Part shown: positions 16,701 through 27,004 of the stretch, piece after piece
Position numbering within the stretch: position 1 is the stretch's first letter
Layout of the letters: each line of letters begins with the position of its first letter
Source of the DNA: Auanema rhodensis
Taxonomy: Eukaryota; Animalia; Nematoda
Direction of reading: 5' to 3'
Assembly: GCA_964057225.1 (NCBI GenBank)
Contig: OZ059894.1
Coordinates: forward strand, 6,448,001 to 6,512,000
Length of the DNA: 64,000 nt
Made by a program: the position numbers and the translations under genes
The notes under the pieces: model-generated
Database searches by the model: none
Seen by the model: only the letters and a program-made list of their open reading frames with translations
Told to the model about the DNA's origin: nothing

Positions 16701-18137
16701 CAGCTCAGCAGAATATATATGGATTTACTTTCTTTATATAGAATTTTATCCGAGAATGTTTCTGTAGCTGTTGAACAGAATGGTGAAGATGTGTTGAAAG
16801 TTAGTTTAGTTTTGATTATTTAGTTCACAGTGTACTATTCAGATTCCACTTATTAAACACATTCGAGCTGTTAAAAAGGAAATTTTAATTCTTATTTCTA
16901 CTTGGGTATCTAAAACGTGTGATCATCAAATGGTAAAGGACAATATTGTTCCACCACTATTTGATGCCGTCCTCTTGGATTATCAAAAAAACGTTCCATC
17001 AGCTCGCGAACCAAAAGTTTTATCTCTTCTTTCAATCATTATTGCCCAACTGAAGGTATAAGGATAAAGTTTAGTATCCATCATGTTATATTTTTAAGGA
17101 AAATATTTCGTCAGAGGTTACTAAAATCTTGGCTGCCGTTTTCGAGTGTACTTTGGAAATGATCAACAAAGATTTTGAGGTATAAAACATAACACATCTT
17201 TTTCTATGTAGTATTTAGGCTTTCCCTGAACATCGTACAAACTTCTTCCAGTTGTTGCTATCCCTAACTCAGGTATCTGTTGCTTTTCCGATTTATGTTT
17301 ATAACTAACTCTTTAGGAATGTTTCCCAGTGTTGCTTGCCTTGCCTCCTGAGCAGTTCAGTTATATTGTTGATGCTGTGGTTTGGGCGTTCCAACATTCG
17401 ATGAGAAATGTTGCGGAAATCGGTAAATATATTTTAACAAATAAATATTTACCATATTTTCATATAGGATTGGATATTCTGAAGGATATGCTCGAGAAAG
17501 TAGCTGATTTACCAGCAGATCAATCACAGCCTTTCTACAAGAGACATTATATGCAAATTCTTCAGCATGTTCTTGCTGTTATTGCTGATAGCAGTCAAGT
17601 TCATGTAGCAGGTCAGTTTAGCAATTATCATGTGTTCACTTCCGTATCTATAGGCTTGACTTACTATGCTGAAGTTCTCGCTGCATTGTTCCGTGCTGCT
17701 GAACATCATATCAAGGTTCCGCTGAATGATGAAAATCCTCAACAGAACAACATGGACTATATTTATCAGCACATTGGAAACATCTATGTTCAACATTTCA
17801 GCAATTTGACACAGTTAGTGTTTAGATAGTCATGTGAATTCAAAATTTCACTATCTTCAGAGACCAAATTCGGGTTTCAATCAAAGGTTTCTTCTCCTTC
17901 AATGCTGATGTTCCAGCAATGAGAAATCATCTTCGCGACTTCCTTGTTCAAATAAAGGTATGACAATAAAATGAAGGTAAAATTTTCATGAATACGTTAT
18001 AGGAATTTACTGGAGAAGATACTTCTGATTTATTCTTGGAAGAGAGAGAAGCTGAAATTGCTGCCGCGCAAGAGAGAAAGAGAGCAATCCCTGGAATGGT
18101 GAATCCAAACGAGGTTGACGAAGAGGAGATGAGGTGA
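13757..18137 (+). CDS. xpo-1: Exportin-1 (CRM1); many short exons; probable 5' UTR exon from about 13564
   Basis: [82 protein letters not shown] (NES-groove Cys retained), [21 protein letters not shown]. Confidence 0.97.
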
Positions 18138-18552
18138 AATGTTTTCGAAAATATACAAAAAGCGGATTTCCCGATTCACATGCCCGTTTGTTCTAGGCCA
18201 ATATCTTAAGTTATAAGCACAATTATGCCATTTTTAACCACTAAGTTTCACCTTCCCAGGTCTTGACATACTTTAACATGTTCGTATCAAATAAGATCAG
18301 CCATTTTCTTTATATTGTTGAAGTTTTTTTGTTATTCCCTTTATACGGTAGCTATATCCCGCTGATAGCGATCTCCCTTTTTGTATTGAAATATTACATG
18401 TGAATGTGTTATAAACTTATTTTATTTCGATAGCAATCTATCTAATCCCTGTGGAAGAGAGGGTCGTTATGATTTAAAATTTTAGTTATATTAAAAAATA
18501 AAGGGTCATTTTAAGAGAGGCTATAAGATATGAATTTTTATTGAGTTATGTG

Positions 18553-18782
18553 TCAGAGAATAGAGCAGCACTTTGAGGGTTGGCTTGGATGTGAGTCAAA
18601 AGAATCAACAGACGGTTGAGGCAGCAAATTTCCAGATGAAGGCTGAGTTATAACGACTTTTGGAACAGTTGGTTTCGTATTCTAGAATAATAATTGTACC
18701 AAAATATAAGTGAGCAGCACAGAAAAAAATTAAAATGGCAAAATTAACTAACATTGGTATCCACTTTTCCGGGCATTCTCAT
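18553..18782 (-). CDS. Putative 52-aa microprotein with a PxIxIT-like motif (PKVVIT) and C-terminal CaaX (CCSIL*); exons 18782-18753 and 18681-18553
   Basis: TCTTCAG acceptor ending at 18850, ATG at 18782, 71-nt GT-AG intron in phase 0. Product MRMPGKVDTNNTKPTVPKVVITQPSSGNLLPQPSVDSFDSHPSQPSKCCSIL*. Confidence 0.65.
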
Positions 18783-21735
18783 TCTAGTGCTTTTGTAGCA
18801 GTGTCTTCTCGCACATCGTCAACGTAGCAGCACGAAGATCAGGAGCTATCTGAAGATTTAAGCATTTCCAAGAAGAAGATGGACACGAGATTGTTCAAAC
18901 GTCAATATTAGCGAATACATTTCACATAATGAGAACATATTTGTTATACATCTTAAAAATGAAATTTAATGAATTTGTGTTCATTTTTTCATTGCAATTC
19001 AAATAAGAAAGATGGAGAAAGCTTAATACTTGTCCCATATTTTAACATAGCTAAGCGAAATTGATTGGAGGCATTCAGCATTTGGAGATAATGGATGCGA
19101 CGAAAGATTAAGATAGTTCATGTCAAGGATATTGGTGAGGCTTTTGATAAATCGAAGCTTTTTGATAAGATTCAATATTACAAGGAAATCTTCTGCACTA
19201 AGCATGCTGGGGGAGATGAAGTAAGAAAGCTATGACCTTTGCGATGATTCGCTTCATTTCTTGAGAAACCTCTGCTTCGTTTAAGGGATCTCTTCACAAT
19301 GTTCTGCTGGCTCTAACGAATCTAATCAGCAGATAAATGCATAAAATGGAGATCCTTCCCCTTCGCAGTATATCGCCATAATTATGATAGTCTGGGAACT
19401 CGGGCGCGATAAATATATCAAACGAAAATGAAGAGTACCACGACTTACAGGCCACACAATGACTTGTACTGCAATGTTGAAACATTTTGTAGCCGTGTAT
19501 GTGCTATGCTGTCTGTCCAAGGCGAAGGAAAACAATTAGATATAGTTAATTCAATCTTTTGTCTAGAGTAGAAACATGTTCAGCTGTTGTCTCGCTCCAT
19601 TGATTCACTGCCAGGATTGCGATTGAGGAAGACAAGGAGAGACGGAGAGAGGGAAAGAGGTAAGAGAACGTCAGAATGAGAAAGAGAGAGAGAGAATAAA
19701 AAATTTGAATATAGACTGCGAATACTATCGTATGTACGAAACATGGGCTCAGATGTTTAGTTATACCACAGCTTTTCAGTATCGACATAGAATGCTAGAT
19801 TTTAGTTGTATAAGTATGAACTCAGGAGTCAATTTCCATCAAAACATGACAACTTCTCTGCGAAAGCAAAATAATGAAGAAATTCACAACTTGAATCTTC
19901 GTTTGTCGTGTGGACATTTTAAAAGGTGTATAAGGGCAACACCTATTCGTGTTCGAGAGTTTTTAAAACTAAAGGCTTTCCAAAATAGCAATAATAGACA
20001 TCGAAAGTCTAGAGCTCTTTCAGCTAAGGTCACATGGTTCAATAAAAATGACGAATTTCGAAAACAGGCGTCGTTTCGAGACAAGATAAAAGTATTAGTT
20101 TTGCCGAGCTAACTAGGATCAGATGCACTGAAAGGATTCATCATGCCTGTGCCAGAGCTGGCCTAGATTCAACAATAAAAAAGCAACAGGAGGAAAGAAT
20201 CGAACAAGCTTTGAAAGCAAAATGAAGGAAATCAGAAGAGAGTAAACGAAAACAAAATATCATAAGACTACTAAATTATAGCTGGAAACGTTTACGGTTC
20301 CTAACTAATTCTAACAACAAATTGAATTTCGTTATTCTTAAAACGTTGGAACAAATGGTTTTCTGAAAATCGATGTCGTGGAACACAGATGGCTGGAAAG
20401 ATGACGAGAGGCCCCTGGGATTATTATAAAAGTACAGAAAACAAATTGAAGCAATATAAGTGTAAATGTTTATAAAACGGTTTACTTTCTGCTATACAGG
20501 TATCACTGATCAGAAAATATTTATAGCGACGTGTGATTTCATGAACGATCAAAATTGGACAATGACAATGAGATACAGTAGGAAAATGATTGTTGTCAAG
20601 TTTCAATAAAGACATATTTCGCACAGTATGTATTCGAAAATTGAAAATTAACTGCATTTTGTGTCTAGTGTGATGGAGAGCAAGACAATATAGGCTTGGG
20701 TTGTTCCTTTTTGTTATTAAACGACAGCTAAAGGTTATAGAGCTCTATTCGAAAATACATCTACGTAATAAGAGACCATAAAGAAGGGAACATTGACGGT
20801 TTTAATCAAGAGCTACATATATTATGTACGTAAAAGATAAGAGGTCAGAATAGGAAAACAAGAATACATTTGAAATAAAATAGATAACCCACAAATAAAG
20901 CAGTGTAATACCGGGTAATTGAAACGAAGTTTAACTTAACAAAACAAAAAATCATTATAAAAGTGTTTGATGACAAAGAATATATCTTTATATGTAGTTT
21001 TTCACTTACATGTACTGATAAGTCTCGCTTGTTGTTCAGGAGACTTGGAGTCAGAGACTCAGGCGGAGCATATTTGTGGTCTTGGGTTTTTTCTCATGAA
21101 TTTCGTATGCGCAATCGCTCCGATTTTTGCCAACTTCGCGACTTCGAATGCATGGGAAAATAAGCAAACTTTCAAGTAAGACGAACAAGTAATTCTTTGA
21201 ATCAGGAACCTGTTCACTACAAAGTCGTCAATCATAAAAGAGTAATATCTCTCATATTCTCTAAGAAGATTTGTTATGCAGTCACCAAAGTGACCAACTC
21301 ATGCAAAGATTGATGAACAAGCCTAAAACAGTGTACTAGCATAATGGTAGATAGGACAAGCAGTGTGCTAAACCAAGAAGGGTTAACAAGATGGTTAGAG
21401 AAATTAGTAAACAGAAGATCTCTCTCGTAATAATTTATAAACAAGACATGACAGTGTTATGAAAGCTTTAGGAAATTTCAAATTTCGTTCAAGGAGGAAA
21501 GTAGGAAACGCAGTGTTGAAAGCCCGGAAGAAAAGAAAGGAATACTTTTTTTATGAGGCTATACAAAGAAAGAACACACAAGCAGACAATTAATCGTCTT
21601 CGAATTACAACCATTGCACATTTATCTTACGGAATTATTGTAATATAATGTCATATTAGGTCTTATTTCAAAAACTACTTGAAAGTGAAAGGCGTTTACA
21701 TATCCAGGAAAATAGTTAAATTATTGTTTTCATTG

Positions 21736-24329
21736 TCAATTATAGGACGAGCCATTTCGCAAAACAAGTAACAGTTGAAGAGCTTGAGTTTTTGAAGTTA
21801 ACAACAAAAATGACAAACAGGAAGAGAAAGAATTCGGAATAATAGAGAAGACGGCCCCACATGGAGTAAAAAAATAATATTGTCGATAAGCGCTTAAGAC
21901 CATACAAAGTTGACGCAGACTGGAAACGAAATTTGAAATAAGGGCATCTCAAATCTACTTATGGTCCAGGAAAACCGAATAGTAGAGGACATATAACGAA
22001 CGACATGTCGAAATAAACTTCTTGACGGACGTGGTATAGCTTGGTGGTAAGTGTCGAAATAGCTTCTCGATCAATGTGCACTTCAACCATCTGGACTTCA
22101 AACGTAAGCGAGAGAATGAGGGATAGAGGAAAAGAGAGAAAGCCGCTTGGGGGGGGGGTTAGAAAAAGACGAAGGGAAAGGAAGAAATGGATAGACAGAG
22201 AAAGAGGAATGAGCACATCTGAGGACCCATATGGAGAGGAATAGTGAGAGGAGAATTAAATACTCGAATGTCGTACCATAATTGGTTCTGCTACTCTTCA
22301 AGTTGACAAGCGCATTTGTTAAATCTTCATGAAAACGATATGTCCACCAAGTATGAATAGAAAAATAAATGAAAAACAAGACTATTCTTTGAAAACTGCA
22401 TGATCAACATTTAAGAGTTAGAACCTTTTCCAGTAACACCATCTTCTCTTCTCTTATAGTAATCCCAATTAAAATGCATTTCTAGTCTATCCTCTTTTTA
22501 TCCATTCTATTCTCAACCAGTAAAGCGATGAGATCAAATAGCATCGTCTATTCTCTGTATATCTACTTTCAACAACAGCTAGATAACGAAAGCTCGAGGA
22601 AGTTGCTCATCCTTGTATATGCATTTTACGCTCAAAAGAATTGAAAAAGAAATGTTAGAGTGCAGTTAGATGTATCTAATAATTCCCTTAGGGTTCAAAC
22701 AAATCAGGTCTGATGTAGACTGACGGATGGTCATATCCAGAGAGAGCATACAAAGTCACATAGTTGACAAGGCAATTTTTCATATCTAGTAGGCTGCTCG
22801 TAAAAGCTATGAAGACCTTAATTGTAAGTCTTAGGAAACTAACAAAAGACAATTCCAACCATGGCGCATAATATATAGCTCATTTCTCTAGTTTGAAAAT
22901 AATTTAACTATAAAAGAGCATTTCAAACATATGAGTAAGAAAAATGTCAAATGGAGTGGAATGAATGGAAACTAGTTCACACAATAAGGTAATCGCAATA
23001 TAATTCAACAAAAAAAATAAAAAGGACATGAATGATTGCAATTTCGCAACAACTGGAAGATTTGAAGCATTAATGACAACATTAAGAGACTAACTTCGTT
23101 TGATAAGATAAAATTGATCTTGAGCTTAACGACTGCAGCAAAACATAACAAGCCATAAAAACAAGAAAAATTAAAACTTCTCAAAAAAAAGTAGCGTTAC
23201 TAGCTTAGGCGATAAAATTGGCACGCATATCCATATGCACAGGAGTAATCTGATACTTCATGCGAGAGCTATATCCATTAACAGCCAAAACAGTGAACCA
23301 AGAAAACAATAAAAAATCGTGGTTCACATTCCATTTAAGACCCACCCAGATAATTCAGAACTTAATCGCAGAGGAAATCAAGCATAATTATAAAATATAC
23401 CATCAAAGATTAACTTTGTAGTTAGATGCATAGGTCTACATATGTATTCTTTTGCACTCAATCAGCATAGAAGATTCTATTCAAGAAACAATTTGATTTC
23501 GGCATGACGATGCTCGCTAATATGCATCCACATAGAAGTATTCAAGGAATAAATAAAAAATGATTTCAATATTAGATTTTGCAGAAGTGGACACTGAGAA
23601 TAACCGACTATAGGACGAGTAAGAACATCGTAGGTTCCCAAGATAATCTATCAAGAATTGATGTAAAAATATGTGTGCACAGCAATCTCATATAACTAAT
23701 TTGATTCTGGCAATGTAACTAAAATATATCTTCATTTTGGACATTGATATATAAGCAAGATTCAGAATAAGGTTATTTTGAATCTAGGATAATAGAATGC
23801 CTCTGTTTTCCATAAGTAAAATATATAATCCACTCAAAAACTACCTCCACCCCTTTTCCTTATCCCAAAGCCAAAGACAGCATAATCCTCGGGAAAACTA
23901 TGATTAAACACGAAAAGAAAGTCAATATAAGGAAAGAAGAAAACGACAATATGTTAAAATACACACCTCGCTTTCTTGTATCCGGAAACGACTTCCTTTT
24001 TCAGATGACGAGGTGGATAAATGCTGAAAGTTAATTTTAAATTGAGAAATCAGTTAAATACTGAATATTTCATTAGTAAGATAAAAATAATTGGATGAAA
24101 TATGAGTGATGTCGTCGAATCAAATGCCTTCAAAATTAACCTACAATACTACGACTAGAATCTGTGCCTGACGAAGATTTCGACAAATATTGGAGCGGAA
24201 TATCACTTGAAAAATTATTGGGGCCGTGTCCTTAAACAAAAAACAGTCGTTCATGATAAATTATTAAGAATAAATGAATTGACAAAAAAACAAACCGCTC
24301 TCGTATTCATCTTTCCTATTTGTTGACAT
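21736..24329 (-). CDS. Unannotated six-exon gene, 181 aa, Ser-rich N-terminus plus putative divergent PH-like domain
   Basis: Exons 24329-24296, 24230-24145, 24023-23967, 23897-23845, 22090-21959 and 21919-21736 join in frame through GT-AG introns of 65, 121, 69, 1754 and 39 nt. Confidence 0.6.
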
Positions 24330-25564
24330 CTTATCTATTACTTTATTAAACATTCCAAAAATTATATCTGAAACGAAACTAATATATGTAACGAGTTTAT
24401 CAACAAGCCTCTAATAGCACTAAATGGGTTATAACTAAATGGCATCTTATGATAGTCTTCTATTTTCGCGCGTCCAATGTGTGAACGCAGACGTGTATGC
24501 TATGCTAATTAGTGAAATCTGAACAATGAACAATCTTAAAATGAATATGAACATGAACAAAAGAAAACAGTTATTAACCAATAAAAAAGTTATTGGTATT
24601 GTAAAATATTTATTTTTATCAGTTTTTCCAATTTCATAATTAATACAGATTCAAGGATAAAATTTGGCGCGACAAAATTGTTTCAATATACAAAATTTAT
24701 CAATTTATGTTGTTGAAAATACTGGTAGCTTTTCGTAATTTGTAAAAATAATTACATGTTATAAGTTCTAGTGAAGTATATTTCAAAGTTAAATTCTTGT
24801 TTTTCTGTCATAATTCATATATATATATATATATATGTACTTGTTTAAATAATACTCGTATCACAATTCACATTTTTTCGTTTCAAGAATTGGAATAGCT
24901 TGCTTGCTAAATAGATCTTTGTACAAGTGGTTTCTTCATAAGACTATGTTTTTTGAATACCAAAGATCGGTATATTCTAGAGATTTAACCATTTATCTTG
25001 GGCCATCGTATAAACACAAACTGACGAAATAATACGTTTTGCTGATATTTTCCAGGGTTGTACCAATTCAGCTTGAACAATTCAGCAATTTCCTGATTGT
25101 AATATCTAGAGCTAGGCAATGTTTGAAAACACGTAAATCAATGTTGGCAATCTGAGTTGTAATAGATACGAAAGAAAATGAAGGACACCAATGCGTTTCT
25201 CATTCTCTGATAGATTCATTTCTTAAACCATCAGACTGCTTCTCAACGGTTTATGTTTGCTTCTTGATTGAAACAAGTATTTGAATATAGCTTTTTTTTA
25301 ACTTTCAAACTCTTGTTTTTCGTCAATATGGTATTCATTAATTTAAAGTTTATTTTTTTATTCTGTACAATATCTGAAGTTGTGAACACCTAGGGATTAA
25401 TTGAGACAGCTGCAATTATTAAAACCAGTAGAAACATTTGGGCAATAGTACCGGTTATATTATGATTGTGCCTTTGGCCTTTTTTCAATCGTGAACAATG
25501 TACAATTACCGATTTTTGCTGATTCTTCTGTCTATTGAACTATACGTAATTGTTAACTTTCAGA

Positions 25565-26095
25565 ATGCGTGTTGCTCTTTGTCTTCTCGGTCTTATTTCG
25601 TTGTCTTTGGCATGTGACATCATCGTTCATGTTAAATCAGATACGGATAAGAAATTCCAGGCACAAGTTACAGCTAGTAATGGCAAGAAAAGTGACAAGT
25701 GAGGCTATGGCAAAAACGTTGTAAGCATATGTGTACATATTTTAGATGGACTTACACCAAGAAATTGAGTAAGAACACTTTCCAAGTCAAGGCTGATGAA
25801 TGTGGAATCAAGGAATGGGAAGTTGCAGTTTTCGATGAATCAGGAAAGCCTACTGGAACAGCTAAGGTTCATATTGATTAGAAATGAAGCGAGAAAACAA
25901 TGAGAAGGAAGTAACGGCTTAAATCTAGTTGCATCTTGAGCTTAAAGTAAATTATATAAAATTATTTACATTACTCAATTTTAGTCTACACTTGATGGCA
26001 TTGGACGTGTCACTTACAAGGTTGGAGATGATTTGATTCCCAAGCAAAAAGATCGCCAGGGAGCCATTTGCAAAGGAGAATGTGCCCCTCTTTGA
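25565..26095 (+). CDS. Small secreted Cys-containing nematode protein (about 121 aa), function unknown; 3 exons
   Basis: TTTCAG immediately before the ATG. Signal peptide [16 protein letters not shown], then [19 protein letters not shown]...[11 protein letters not shown]...[16 protein letters not shown]...[11 protein letters not shown]. Exons 25565-25698, 25746-25866, 25985-26095. AATAAA about 25 nt after the stop. Confidence 0.85.
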
Positions 26096-27004
26096 ATATG
26101 AAATGTTTGAGATTATGTAATAAAACTTACAGAAATATCATAAAATATACCTACTATAATTGTGAAAATTTTCTTACCACTAATTAAGATAAAGATAAAT
26201 GATTTCAATTCCCAGAAGTCTTACAATTTAACAATTACTTTATTCACAACCTCTTAGAACATGTGTGACGAATAAAGTTCATTGATATTGAACTAATGTA
26301 ATTTATACCAAAAAGCTTTTTTTATAGAGATCCTTATTGATTTAGAATGCGTTAAAAAAACAAATCTTACACCAATATGGTTATCTACGCACTTACGTGA
26401 AAAAATACGCCACGTGGTATTCAAATAACAAAATAATTTTTAATTCGATTTTATAAACTAATAGCTCGTATTCACTACAATGCACATTTACGCTGTTTTT
26501 GCTTCGGGCGGATTCTCAGTACTCTTGTTTCTTCTTGAAAATTTGTAATTTCTTCTCAAAGCTAAATAAATATCAGACTGTTTCCTAGAAATTAATTAAA
26601 TTTTCTTGCATTCTAACATTCAAAAACTTTAAAGAACTGACAAAATATCAAATAAGCGGTCTATGCAGTCATTGGTGTACTTTATGTTTTGGATGCAAAT
26701 GCGCCCTGTTGCGAATCATAATGCTGCGTACCAAAGTATTGTGGCTTGTTGGAAAGTATTTATTGCTTCTGATTATGCTAATTTGATTTTCAGTATTTTA
26801 GAACTTTTATTGGAACCCTTGTTTTACAAATAAGGTTAACAACTGTATGAACATCTAAGTTTTTTTGAATGTTCTTCGAGTTATTAACTGATATTAATTT
26901 AATTTGTTGCGCATAATTAAGTTTTTGTAATATGCTAAAGTATACTTTTCGACCTGTTTTTTCTATAAATGAGAACTGTATCGTGGGCATTTTTAGCGAT
27001 ATAA

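Follow-up and report, generated by a model that had tools for sequence, protein, structure and literature searches.

A 64,000-nucleotide (nt) stretch of the genome of the nematode Auanema rhodensis (positions 6,448,001 to 6,512,000 of contig OZ059894.1, assembly GCA_964057225.1; hereafter, the window, with positions counted from its first letter) carries on the minus strand a two-exon open reading frame (ORF) that extends from the ATG at 18782 to the stop codon at 18553 and encodes a 52-amino-acid (aa) Pro/Ser-rich protein ending in KCCSIL. Here we show that strong purifying selection acts on this protein-coding ORF, which is the local orthologue of the Caenorhabditis elegans gene ZK742.6. The two blocks that are invariant across the family resemble a calcineurin-docking motif of the PxIxIT type and a C-terminal prenylation (CaaX) box, respectively, and on the strength of these sequence features we give an about even chance to the microprotein being a lipid-anchored tether, sequestrator or regulator of calcineurin.

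The two-exon ORF had been pointed out in an earlier note on this stretch (18553-18849, with the KCCSIL end and the string VPKVVITQPS), and its coordinates and translation were accurate. The exon junction across 18682-18752, which that note singled out for a check against RNA, was found in assembled contigs of all four runs (X1 to X4) of one sequencing study, where the intron is precisely skipped (CT..AC on the plus strand, equivalent to GT..AG on the minus strand). These contigs represent spliced RNA, because the four GT..AG introns of the plus-strand neighbour gene, an xpo-1 homolog, are removed in the same contigs. On the exon 1 side, contig coverage spans 18753-18851 in X1 and X2 and extends to 18826 in X3 and X4. 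A second in-frame ATG at 18776 would yield a 50-aa product, which aligns with the start of the related proteins described below. Each of the three frames entering the exon 18849-18753 runs into a stop codon ahead of the microprotein ATG and the relatives are stand-alone coding sequences (CDSs), so that the microprotein being the C-terminus of a larger protein was ruled out. An exact look-up of the 52-aa product returned no record, the window copy being missing from the protein collection for its own genome; the gene thus appears to be unannotated in A. rhodensis.

An exhaustive phmmer search with exon 2 as the query aligned the 54-aa C. elegans protein ZK742.6 end to end at the C-terminus (E-value of 9e-5). 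An exact look-up identified this protein as NP_001123081.1 (UniProt A3FPJ7, 'uncharacterized protein'), and it clusters with C. remanei CRE_18621 and C. briggsae CBG20575. The top phmmer match, the 816-aa tandem-repeat protein P0001, was discarded as a low-complexity artefact. Profile searches yielded ten more members with E-values between 1e-14 and 1e-24 (the profile E-values overall extended to 1e-31), in species including Diploscapter pachys, Cylicocyclus nassatus, Teladorsagia circumcincta, Necator americanus, Haemonchus placei, Ancylostoma ceylanicum, and Dictyocaulus viviparus. Altogether, 11 relatives were identified, all in clade V nematodes: C. elegans, C. briggsae, C. remanei, Diploscapter, and seven strongylids. 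A word-index search with the 52-aa protein alone came up blank, though proteins sharing at least six 5-residue words with it were found with profiles; this is a limit of the tool and not an indication of absence.

The proteins of the ZK742.6 group share 49-63% identity and have the same PKVVITQPSS block, the same CC-x-IL end, and a two-exon CDS. The window transcript differs from them in possessing extra upstream exons across a 5.1-kb intron (see below). Across the family, the first coding exon comprises 3-11 codons and the intron lies a few codons 5' of the motif, at a distance of 5-7 codons from PKVV in C. elegans, C. remanei, C. briggsae, and Cylicocyclus. The genome neighbourhood is conserved as well: in C. 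elegans, C. remanei, C. briggsae, Cylicocyclus, Necator, and Teladorsagia, as in the window, the gene is arranged tail-to-tail with xpo-1/CRM1. The exception is the Diploscapter pachys orthologue (LIAE01010340.1), where the xpo-1 neighbourhood has been lost. Some predicted relatives are longer (86-99 aa) and differ only by unconserved N-terminal extensions, which look like errors of the gene models. By sequence, structure and synteny alike, the window gene is the local orthologue of ZK742.6.

The annotated orthologues (CBG20575, CRE_18621, WR25_23784, NECAME_00346, TELCIR_00550, Y032_0003g1158, and DICVIV_02286, along with unnamed Cylicocyclus and Haemonchus products) are, like all the relatives, labelled hypothetical or uncharacterized. 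None of the relatives belongs to a Pfam family according to a Pfam scan, and a search by gene and locus names found no searchable paper text that mentions ZK742.6 or its orthologues. The suggestion of the earlier note that this is an undescribed system needs correcting: the gene is annotated in related species, as ZK742.6 and under the other names given above, while the proteins are uncharacterized and the A. rhodensis copy is absent from the protein collection of that genome.

Comparison of the three Caenorhabditis species pairwise revealed 2 nonsynonymous versus 23 synonymous differences, 2 versus 28, and 2 versus 16. The corresponding ratios of nonsynonymous to synonymous substitution rates (dN/dS), with synonymous sites saturated, are 0.01-0.03 (binomial P of 1e-8 to 1e-15). 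The microprotein frame is therefore a protein-coding gene under strong purifying selection. The ORF is short, and at the local base composition an open exon of 42 codons is expected by chance with P ~0.04 per frame, which is what could be said for a chance ORF in a non-coding or untranslated region (UTR). Given the eleven homologs, the conserved synteny and exon structure, and the low dN/dS, this explanation is refuted: because of homology and selection, the gene is more than a chance occurrence.

The mean column identity across the family alignment is 54%, and the conservation is concentrated in a few positions. In the twelve sequences, the invariant columns are PKVV[I/V]TQPSS, a single Leu three residues further on, and the terminal CC-x-I-L, whereas the rest of the sequence drifts. 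A lack of conservation of the motifs in orthologues had been named in the earlier note among the results that would refute its interpretation; the outcome was favourable to it, PKVV[IV]TQPSS and CC-x-IL turning out to be the only invariant blocks in the 11 relatives. In every member, 23-27 residues separate the end of the motif from the CaaX Cys. An AlphaFold2 model built with the family alignment contains no secondary structure (predicted template modelling score of 0.17; mean predicted local distance difference test score of 63.5), which fits a disordered chain that presents linear motifs.

The first block matches the calcineurin-docking pattern P-[^PG]-[IVLF]-[^PG]-[IVLF]-[TSHEDQNKR] with PKVVIT at residues 17-22 and with PKVV[IV]T in 11 of the 11 relatives. 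As expected of a PxIxIT site, it is located in an accessible, predicted disordered segment and is conserved among orthologues. The flanks are those of high-affinity sites: members of the family have V, L or P at position -1, K at position 2, P at position 8, and S at position 9. Calcineurin binding is strengthened by Lys or Arg at position 2, PKIVIT and PKIIIT of A238L ranking with the strongest binders; V, L or I is favoured at position -1, and PPKIIIT is an enhanced variant; and phospho-Ser or phospho-Thr at position 9 increases the affinity of PVIVIT about 50-fold (PMC6728138). The sole natural variation within the motif, I5V in Haemonchus and Dictyocaulus, is a change with little effect on calcineurin binding (PMC6728138). 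The docking mode itself operates in C. elegans, between RCAN-1 and the calcineurin A subunit TAX-6 (PMC5125939). Among shuffles of the window protein, 11% contained the loose motif, 2% matched the strict pattern P-x-[IVL]-x-[IVL]-T, and 0.07% matched its extension, P-x-[IVL]-x-[IVL]-T-x-P-[ST]. By itself, the motif is weak evidence; as judged from the sequences, its invariance and the fit of its flanks, taken together, are not weak.

The second block has all the features of a CaaX box: C-[STVC]-I-L ends every member of the family, with the Cys exactly four residues from the C-terminus, an aliphatic residue at a2, and Leu at X. A Cys at -4 followed by Ile at a2 and Leu at X is the textbook box of geranylgeranyl transferase I, and the adjacent upstream Cys is S-acylated in RhoB-type and Ral-type C-termini. 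In the microprotein family, the CC pair is always found exactly at positions -5/-4 from the end, and such strict terminal placement is what a predicted CaaX box requires.

Combined, these features suggest the following mechanism. The CaaX Cys would be geranylgeranylated and the neighbouring Cys S-acylated, which would pin the C-terminus to a membrane, and PKVVIT would dock as a beta-strand in the PxIxIT groove of calcineurin A (TAX-6). The microprotein might then recruit, sequester or locally regulate calcineurin at the membrane, and phosphorylation of the Ser that is invariant at position 9 of the motif may tune the affinity, as it does in vertebrate calcimembrin. It is plausible, and we would put the chances near even, that the family represents a new version of the calcimembrin-type calcineurin tether, one that is prenylated at its C-terminus. 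The most specific version of this scheme is more tentative: a convergent counterpart of calcimembrin in clade V nematodes, that is, a geranylgeranylated and palmitoylated membrane tether of TAX-6, about 50 residues long, with a high-affinity PPKVVIT-type site and a phospho-switch at the position-9 Ser, the synthesis of which might be coupled to an upstream ORF.

Several observations weigh against a calcineurin tether. The PxIxIT pattern is degenerate, as the frequency of its loose form among the shuffles illustrates, and position 3 of the motif is Val, the preferred residue being Ile. An LxVP motif is absent from the family; therefore, the microprotein would be a tether or an inhibitor rather than a substrate like calcimembrin. 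The invariance over 10 residues exceeds that of usual PxIxIT sites and could be explained by a different partner or by several partners. Members of the family turned up in clade V nematodes only, in searches constrained by a word index and by the length window used. Calcineurin binding, lipidation, localization and phosphorylation are what we infer from the sequences. Finally, on the only isoform present in the RNA contigs, the microprotein AUG is preceded by at least ~395 nt of leader and by several other AUGs, a combination that argues against efficient translation from that isoform.

Some of these points are shared by an alternative that we consider a lesser but real possibility, namely, that the lipid-anchored microprotein exists as described and PKVVITQPSS binds another partner (for instance, a kinase, a membrane protein, or some other domain that captures beta-strands), in which case the PxIxIT likeness would be coincidental. 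The evidence for the reality of the gene and the conservation of the CaaX box is just as compatible with this alternative; chains rich in Pro, Val and Ile often contain PxIxIT-like strings, as evidenced by the shuffles, in both the loose and the strict form; and the ten invariant residues, which surpass the usual PxIxIT footprint, include TQ and SS that could be kinase sites. However, the block also matches four independent measured determinants of calcineurin binding (positions -1 and 2, Pro 8, and Ser 9), a combination that is rare among the shuffles in its extended form, and the only natural variation is a tolerated one. To our knowledge, no other named motif fits the 10-mer: RVxF is unfit for want of F or W, the TQT anchor of LC8 would need Pro at +1, and the SH3 register is inconsistent between species.

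A more specific candidate partner is protein phosphatase 1 (PP1). The family profile matches the PPP1R11 chain 8dwk_C over 19 residues that include DT[VI]D and SKCC-I, raising the prospect of a distant relative or analogue of PP1 inhibitor-3 (PPP1R11/Ypi1) in which KVVI would be an RVxF-like dock and D-T-x-D...SKCC-x-I the segment that reaches the active site (SDTVDNEHMGRRSSKCCCI); both proteins are small, disordered and phosphatase-related. Yet, the match is not significant (E = 0.16), and there was no hit to the Ypi1 Pfam family at E-values up to 10. Moreover, the Phe/Trp position of RVxF is Ile or Val in all members, the spacing between DTxD and CC varies from 10 to 14 residues, and the location of CC strictly at -5/-4 suits a CaaX box rather than an internal, metal-binding CCC. 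We therefore regard a kinship with PPP1R11 as very unlikely.

Even less probable is that the microprotein gives rise, after prenylation, processing and export, to a lipopeptide signal similar to the fungal a-factor pheromones. The very small size of the precursor, the conserved C-terminal CaaX box and the lack of a signal peptide are compatible with such a role; however, the conserved block is located 23-27 residues from the Cys rather than next to it, the combination of Leu at X with a further Cys suggests a stable, double anchor in the membrane, and none of the data require a lipopeptide. We know of no a-factor-like lipopeptide system in animals. Two further resemblances were noted. A profile search of the PDB showed a weak likeness to NAD+ synthetases (5kha_A and 3n05_A; E of 0.02-0.04), with VLPKVVITQPSSndLlP...DS aligned to V(I)P..VIT(R/K)PPSAELRP...DS, which was judged coincidental, and the best score among the look-alikes of ZK742.6 in the ESM Atlas was 0.78, within noise.

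Among the characterized calcineurin-binding proteins, the closest counterpart of the microprotein that we see is calcimembrin (CLMB, formerly C16orf74), with which the earlier note had drawn an analogy. At the level of the motif, the analogy holds: the QPS flank places a Ser at the position where phosphorylation raises affinity, as in calcimembrin, CABIN1 and PVIVIT (PMC12612047, PMC6728138), and the nematode PKVVITQPS(S), with its phosphorylatable position 9, is in the same extended register as PDIIITPP(p)T of calcimembrin and EITVTPP(p)T of CABIN1 (PMC12612047). In calcimembrin, the phospho-residue confers an approximately 20-fold higher affinity for calcineurin (PMC12612047). Both are disordered microproteins of similar size, and CLMB is bound to the membrane through two kinds of lipid (PMC12612047). 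The features that define the calcimembrin family are lacking, though. The anchor of CLMB is N-terminal (myristate on Gly2 and acylation of Cys7 and Cys14), whereas that of the nematode family would be a C-terminal CCaaX; the window protein starts with MRMPGK and its relatives with MQDMTK, MPEK or MPPS, without Gly2 or the N-terminal Cys residues. Furthermore, CLMB is a substrate with a composite LxVPxIxIT, in place of which the nematode proteins have P-T-V, R-R-P, P-V-P, T-P-L or P-V-L before the Pro of the motif. With no homology to calcimembrin shown, the predicted anchor at the other end of the protein, and a prenyl group as its expected lipid, convergence is the likelier explanation.

In the scan against 24,736 Pfam models, the only signal came from DUF4609, at 14.3 bits versus a cut-off of 27 (E of 0.04) and in two of eight members. 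DUF4609 is the SPATA33 family (PMC3699523), and SPATA33 tethers sperm calcineurin to mitochondria via a conserved PQIIIT (PMC8536318). Like the nematode microprotein, SPATA33 is a small, Ser-rich, disordered protein with a PxIxIT-type site that localizes calcineurin, but it is mammalian, anchored through VDAC2, and has no CaaX box. The similarity is below the threshold for membership in the family and is only a lead. High-affinity PxIxIT sites are also found in AKAP79/AKAP5 (PIAIIIT) and in the viral inhibitor A238L (PKIIIT), proteins with a scaffolding or inhibitory action on calcineurin; the Lys at position 2 of PKVVIT recurs in A238L and in the optimised PKIVIT (PMC6728138). These proteins differ from the microprotein in being much larger, containing other domains and not being prenylated, and A238L also has an LxVP-type site.

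The predicted anchor has its own precedents in the CCaaX ends of the RhoB and Ral type and in the CaaL end of G-gamma, where Leu at X directs modification by geranylgeranyl transferase I. The C-C-a-a-L pattern is common to these proteins and the nematode family, but the former are GTPases or G-gamma subunits that carry folded domains, in place of which the microprotein has a disordered chain of 45 residues.

A limited number of anchoring proteins direct calcineurin, and the lipid-anchored microproteins among these (SPATA33 in 2021 and calcimembrin in 2025) are recent discoveries made in vertebrates only. If the proposed function is correct, the nematode family would apply the same logic with the anchor at the opposite end, and in a genetically tractable animal, where the phenotypes of ZK742.6 could be compared with those of tax-6, cnb-1 and rcan-1. 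It would, in addition, provide a model of the way in which calcineurin signalling is shaped by sequestration at a membrane and by a phospho-switch at position 9, as well as a natural example of evolution conserving an 'extended' PxIxIT that has been defined in vitro. It would also be a candidate function for a gene of strongylid parasites (Haemonchus, Necator, Ancylostoma, and Teladorsagia) that, within the reach of the searches, was not found outside nematodes. The case further illustrates that two-exon genes of about 50 residues are overlooked by some nematode annotations.

The upstream part of the transcript is more complex than its coding part. The acceptor at 18850|18849 (ttcag|ATAG, 18849 being the first base after it), which the earlier note had called good, does exist. 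It is not shown to be the 5' end of the transcript, as in two runs it is cis-spliced to 23967. The X1 and X2 contigs depart from the local sequence at 18851 and extend for at least 303 and at least 328 nt further with letters not present in 17300-23200, the first 30 of which match uniquely to 23969-23998, next to the donor GAG|gtgtgt. Thus, this acceptor is cis-spliced over a 5.1-kb intron to upstream exons, and what is joined to it greatly exceeds a spliced leader (SL) in length. The lengths of the X1 and X2 contigs require further exons beyond the first upstream exon (E3), and the leader ahead of the microprotein AUG on this isoform amounts to at least ~395 nt, with the CDS confined to the last two exons. 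The microprotein AUG might be reached through a short, SL-trans-spliced isoform or through reinitiation after upstream ORFs.

One short upstream ORF, MCEKTLLQKH, is located in 18783-18849, and its stop codon, TAG at 18786-18784, ends 1 nt before the microprotein ATG. When the leader exons E1-E3, the last of which is seen in RNA, are joined to 18849-18784, they can be read as an 88-codon Ser-rich ORF (MFNKVIDKMSTNRKDEYESGHGPNNFSS...; hereafter, ORF1) that terminates at this TAG. ORF1 has a chance probability of P ~0.001 per frame, a value that applies to predicted exons with one donor picked to keep the frame open; an alternative donor shortens it to 56 codons. Tblastn and tblastx searches found no match to ORF1 in the 6-10 kb upstream of seven orthologues.

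It is unlikely that ORF1 (~24367-23967 joined to 18849-18784) is the true coding gene, with the KCCSIL frame in its 3' UTR, or that the two frames form a bicistronic unit with reinitiation. The X1 and X2 contigs that join the exon at 23967 to 18849, the 88 open codons and the single nucleotide between TAG and ATG are what speak for this arrangement. Against it, strong purifying selection acts on the KCCSIL frame itself, which the relatives have as an annotated stand-alone CDS, and ORF1 has no counterpart in the 6-10 kb upstream of the seven orthologues, depends on the choice of donor, and includes two exons, E1 and E2, that were read from splice sites only. ORF1 may instead be a lineage-specific upstream ORF with a regulatory role. 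As the microprotein AUG follows the stop codon of this long upstream ORF by 1 nt, translation of the one might also drive that of the other.

In all six species examined, the window included, an acceptor-like TTTCAG is present 34-67 nt upstream of the start codon, the distance of the acceptor in C. elegans being 35 nt, and the leader in between contains a small upstream ORF that terminates at the main ATG or beside it. Small upstream ORFs abut the main ATG in C. elegans and C. remanei (ATGTTCTGA|ATG) and in C. briggsae (ATGCTCCTCTGA|ATG), the Cylicocyclus leader contains an overlapping upstream ORF (ATGCCTGA), and the window has TAG-A-ATG. These small upstream ORFs at the main ATG could reflect conserved translational control or chance in AT-rich leaders. 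An RNA contig at 21035-21241, inside the 5.1-kb leader intron, was found in run X3 only, with a depth of 2.9.

The coordinates of the features discussed here are listed in Table 1.

Table 1. Features of the microprotein gene and of its convergent neighbour in the window
Feature	Position	Strand	Details
Coding exon 1	18753..18782	-	MRMPGKVDTN, ten codons; start ATG 18782-18780
CDS intron	18682..18752	-	71 nt, phase 0, GTTAGT...TCTAG
Coding exon 2	18553..18681	-	42 codons, NTKPTVPKVVITQPSSGNLLPQPSVDSFDSHPSQPSKCCSIL, followed by TGA stop 18555-18553
Invariant block PKVVITQPSS	18634..18663	-	residues 17-26; putative calcineurin-docking motif of the extended PxIxIT type
Peptide RRPPKVVITQPSSND			includes motif position 9 (Ser)
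CCSIL C-terminus	18556..18570	-	predicted CaaX box C-S-I-L (X = Leu) with a Cys immediately upstream
AATAAA polyadenylation signal	18537..18542	-	10 nt 3' of the stop codon; sequence only
Non-coding 5' part of the first coding exon	18783..18849	-	RNA coverage in X1 and X2
Leader intron	18850..23966	-	5.1 kb; boundaries GAG|gtgtgt and ttcag|ATAG; contigs X1 and X2
Leader exon E3	23967..24023	-	3' end and last 32 nt from RNA; 5' boundary (acceptor tttcag) inferred
Leader exon E2	24230-24145 (or to 24141)	-	predicted by splice-site reading only
Leader exon E1	24367-24296	-	predicted by splice-site reading only
Last five exons of the exportin-1/CRM1 (xpo-1) neighbour	17315..18137	+	Pfam CRM1_C, E of 3.5e-9 and 1.7e-6; four introns spliced in RNA

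Downstream of the microprotein gene, the RNA contigs continue past the AATAAA into the 3' UTR of the convergent xpo-1 and are unbroken from the stop codon of the xpo-1-like gene (18137) to that of the microprotein (18553), so that the 3' UTRs of the two convergent genes abut or overlap within ~416 nt. In Diploscapter, the convergent downstream neighbour is a gene for a giant protein with immunoglobulin (I-set) domains, of at least 4755 residues; the second coding exon of the orthologue in this species comprises 63 codons, and its C-terminus is CCCIL.

On the other side, a Pfam search of the neighbouring ORFs, in the 5.1-kb intron and upstream of it, gave nothing. A small multi-exon gene with an apparent signal peptide is located on the plus strand at 25550-26100, in divergent orientation to the microprotein transcript; it matches neither a Pfam family nor the 145-aa gene that precedes ZK742.6 in Caenorhabditis on the upstream side.

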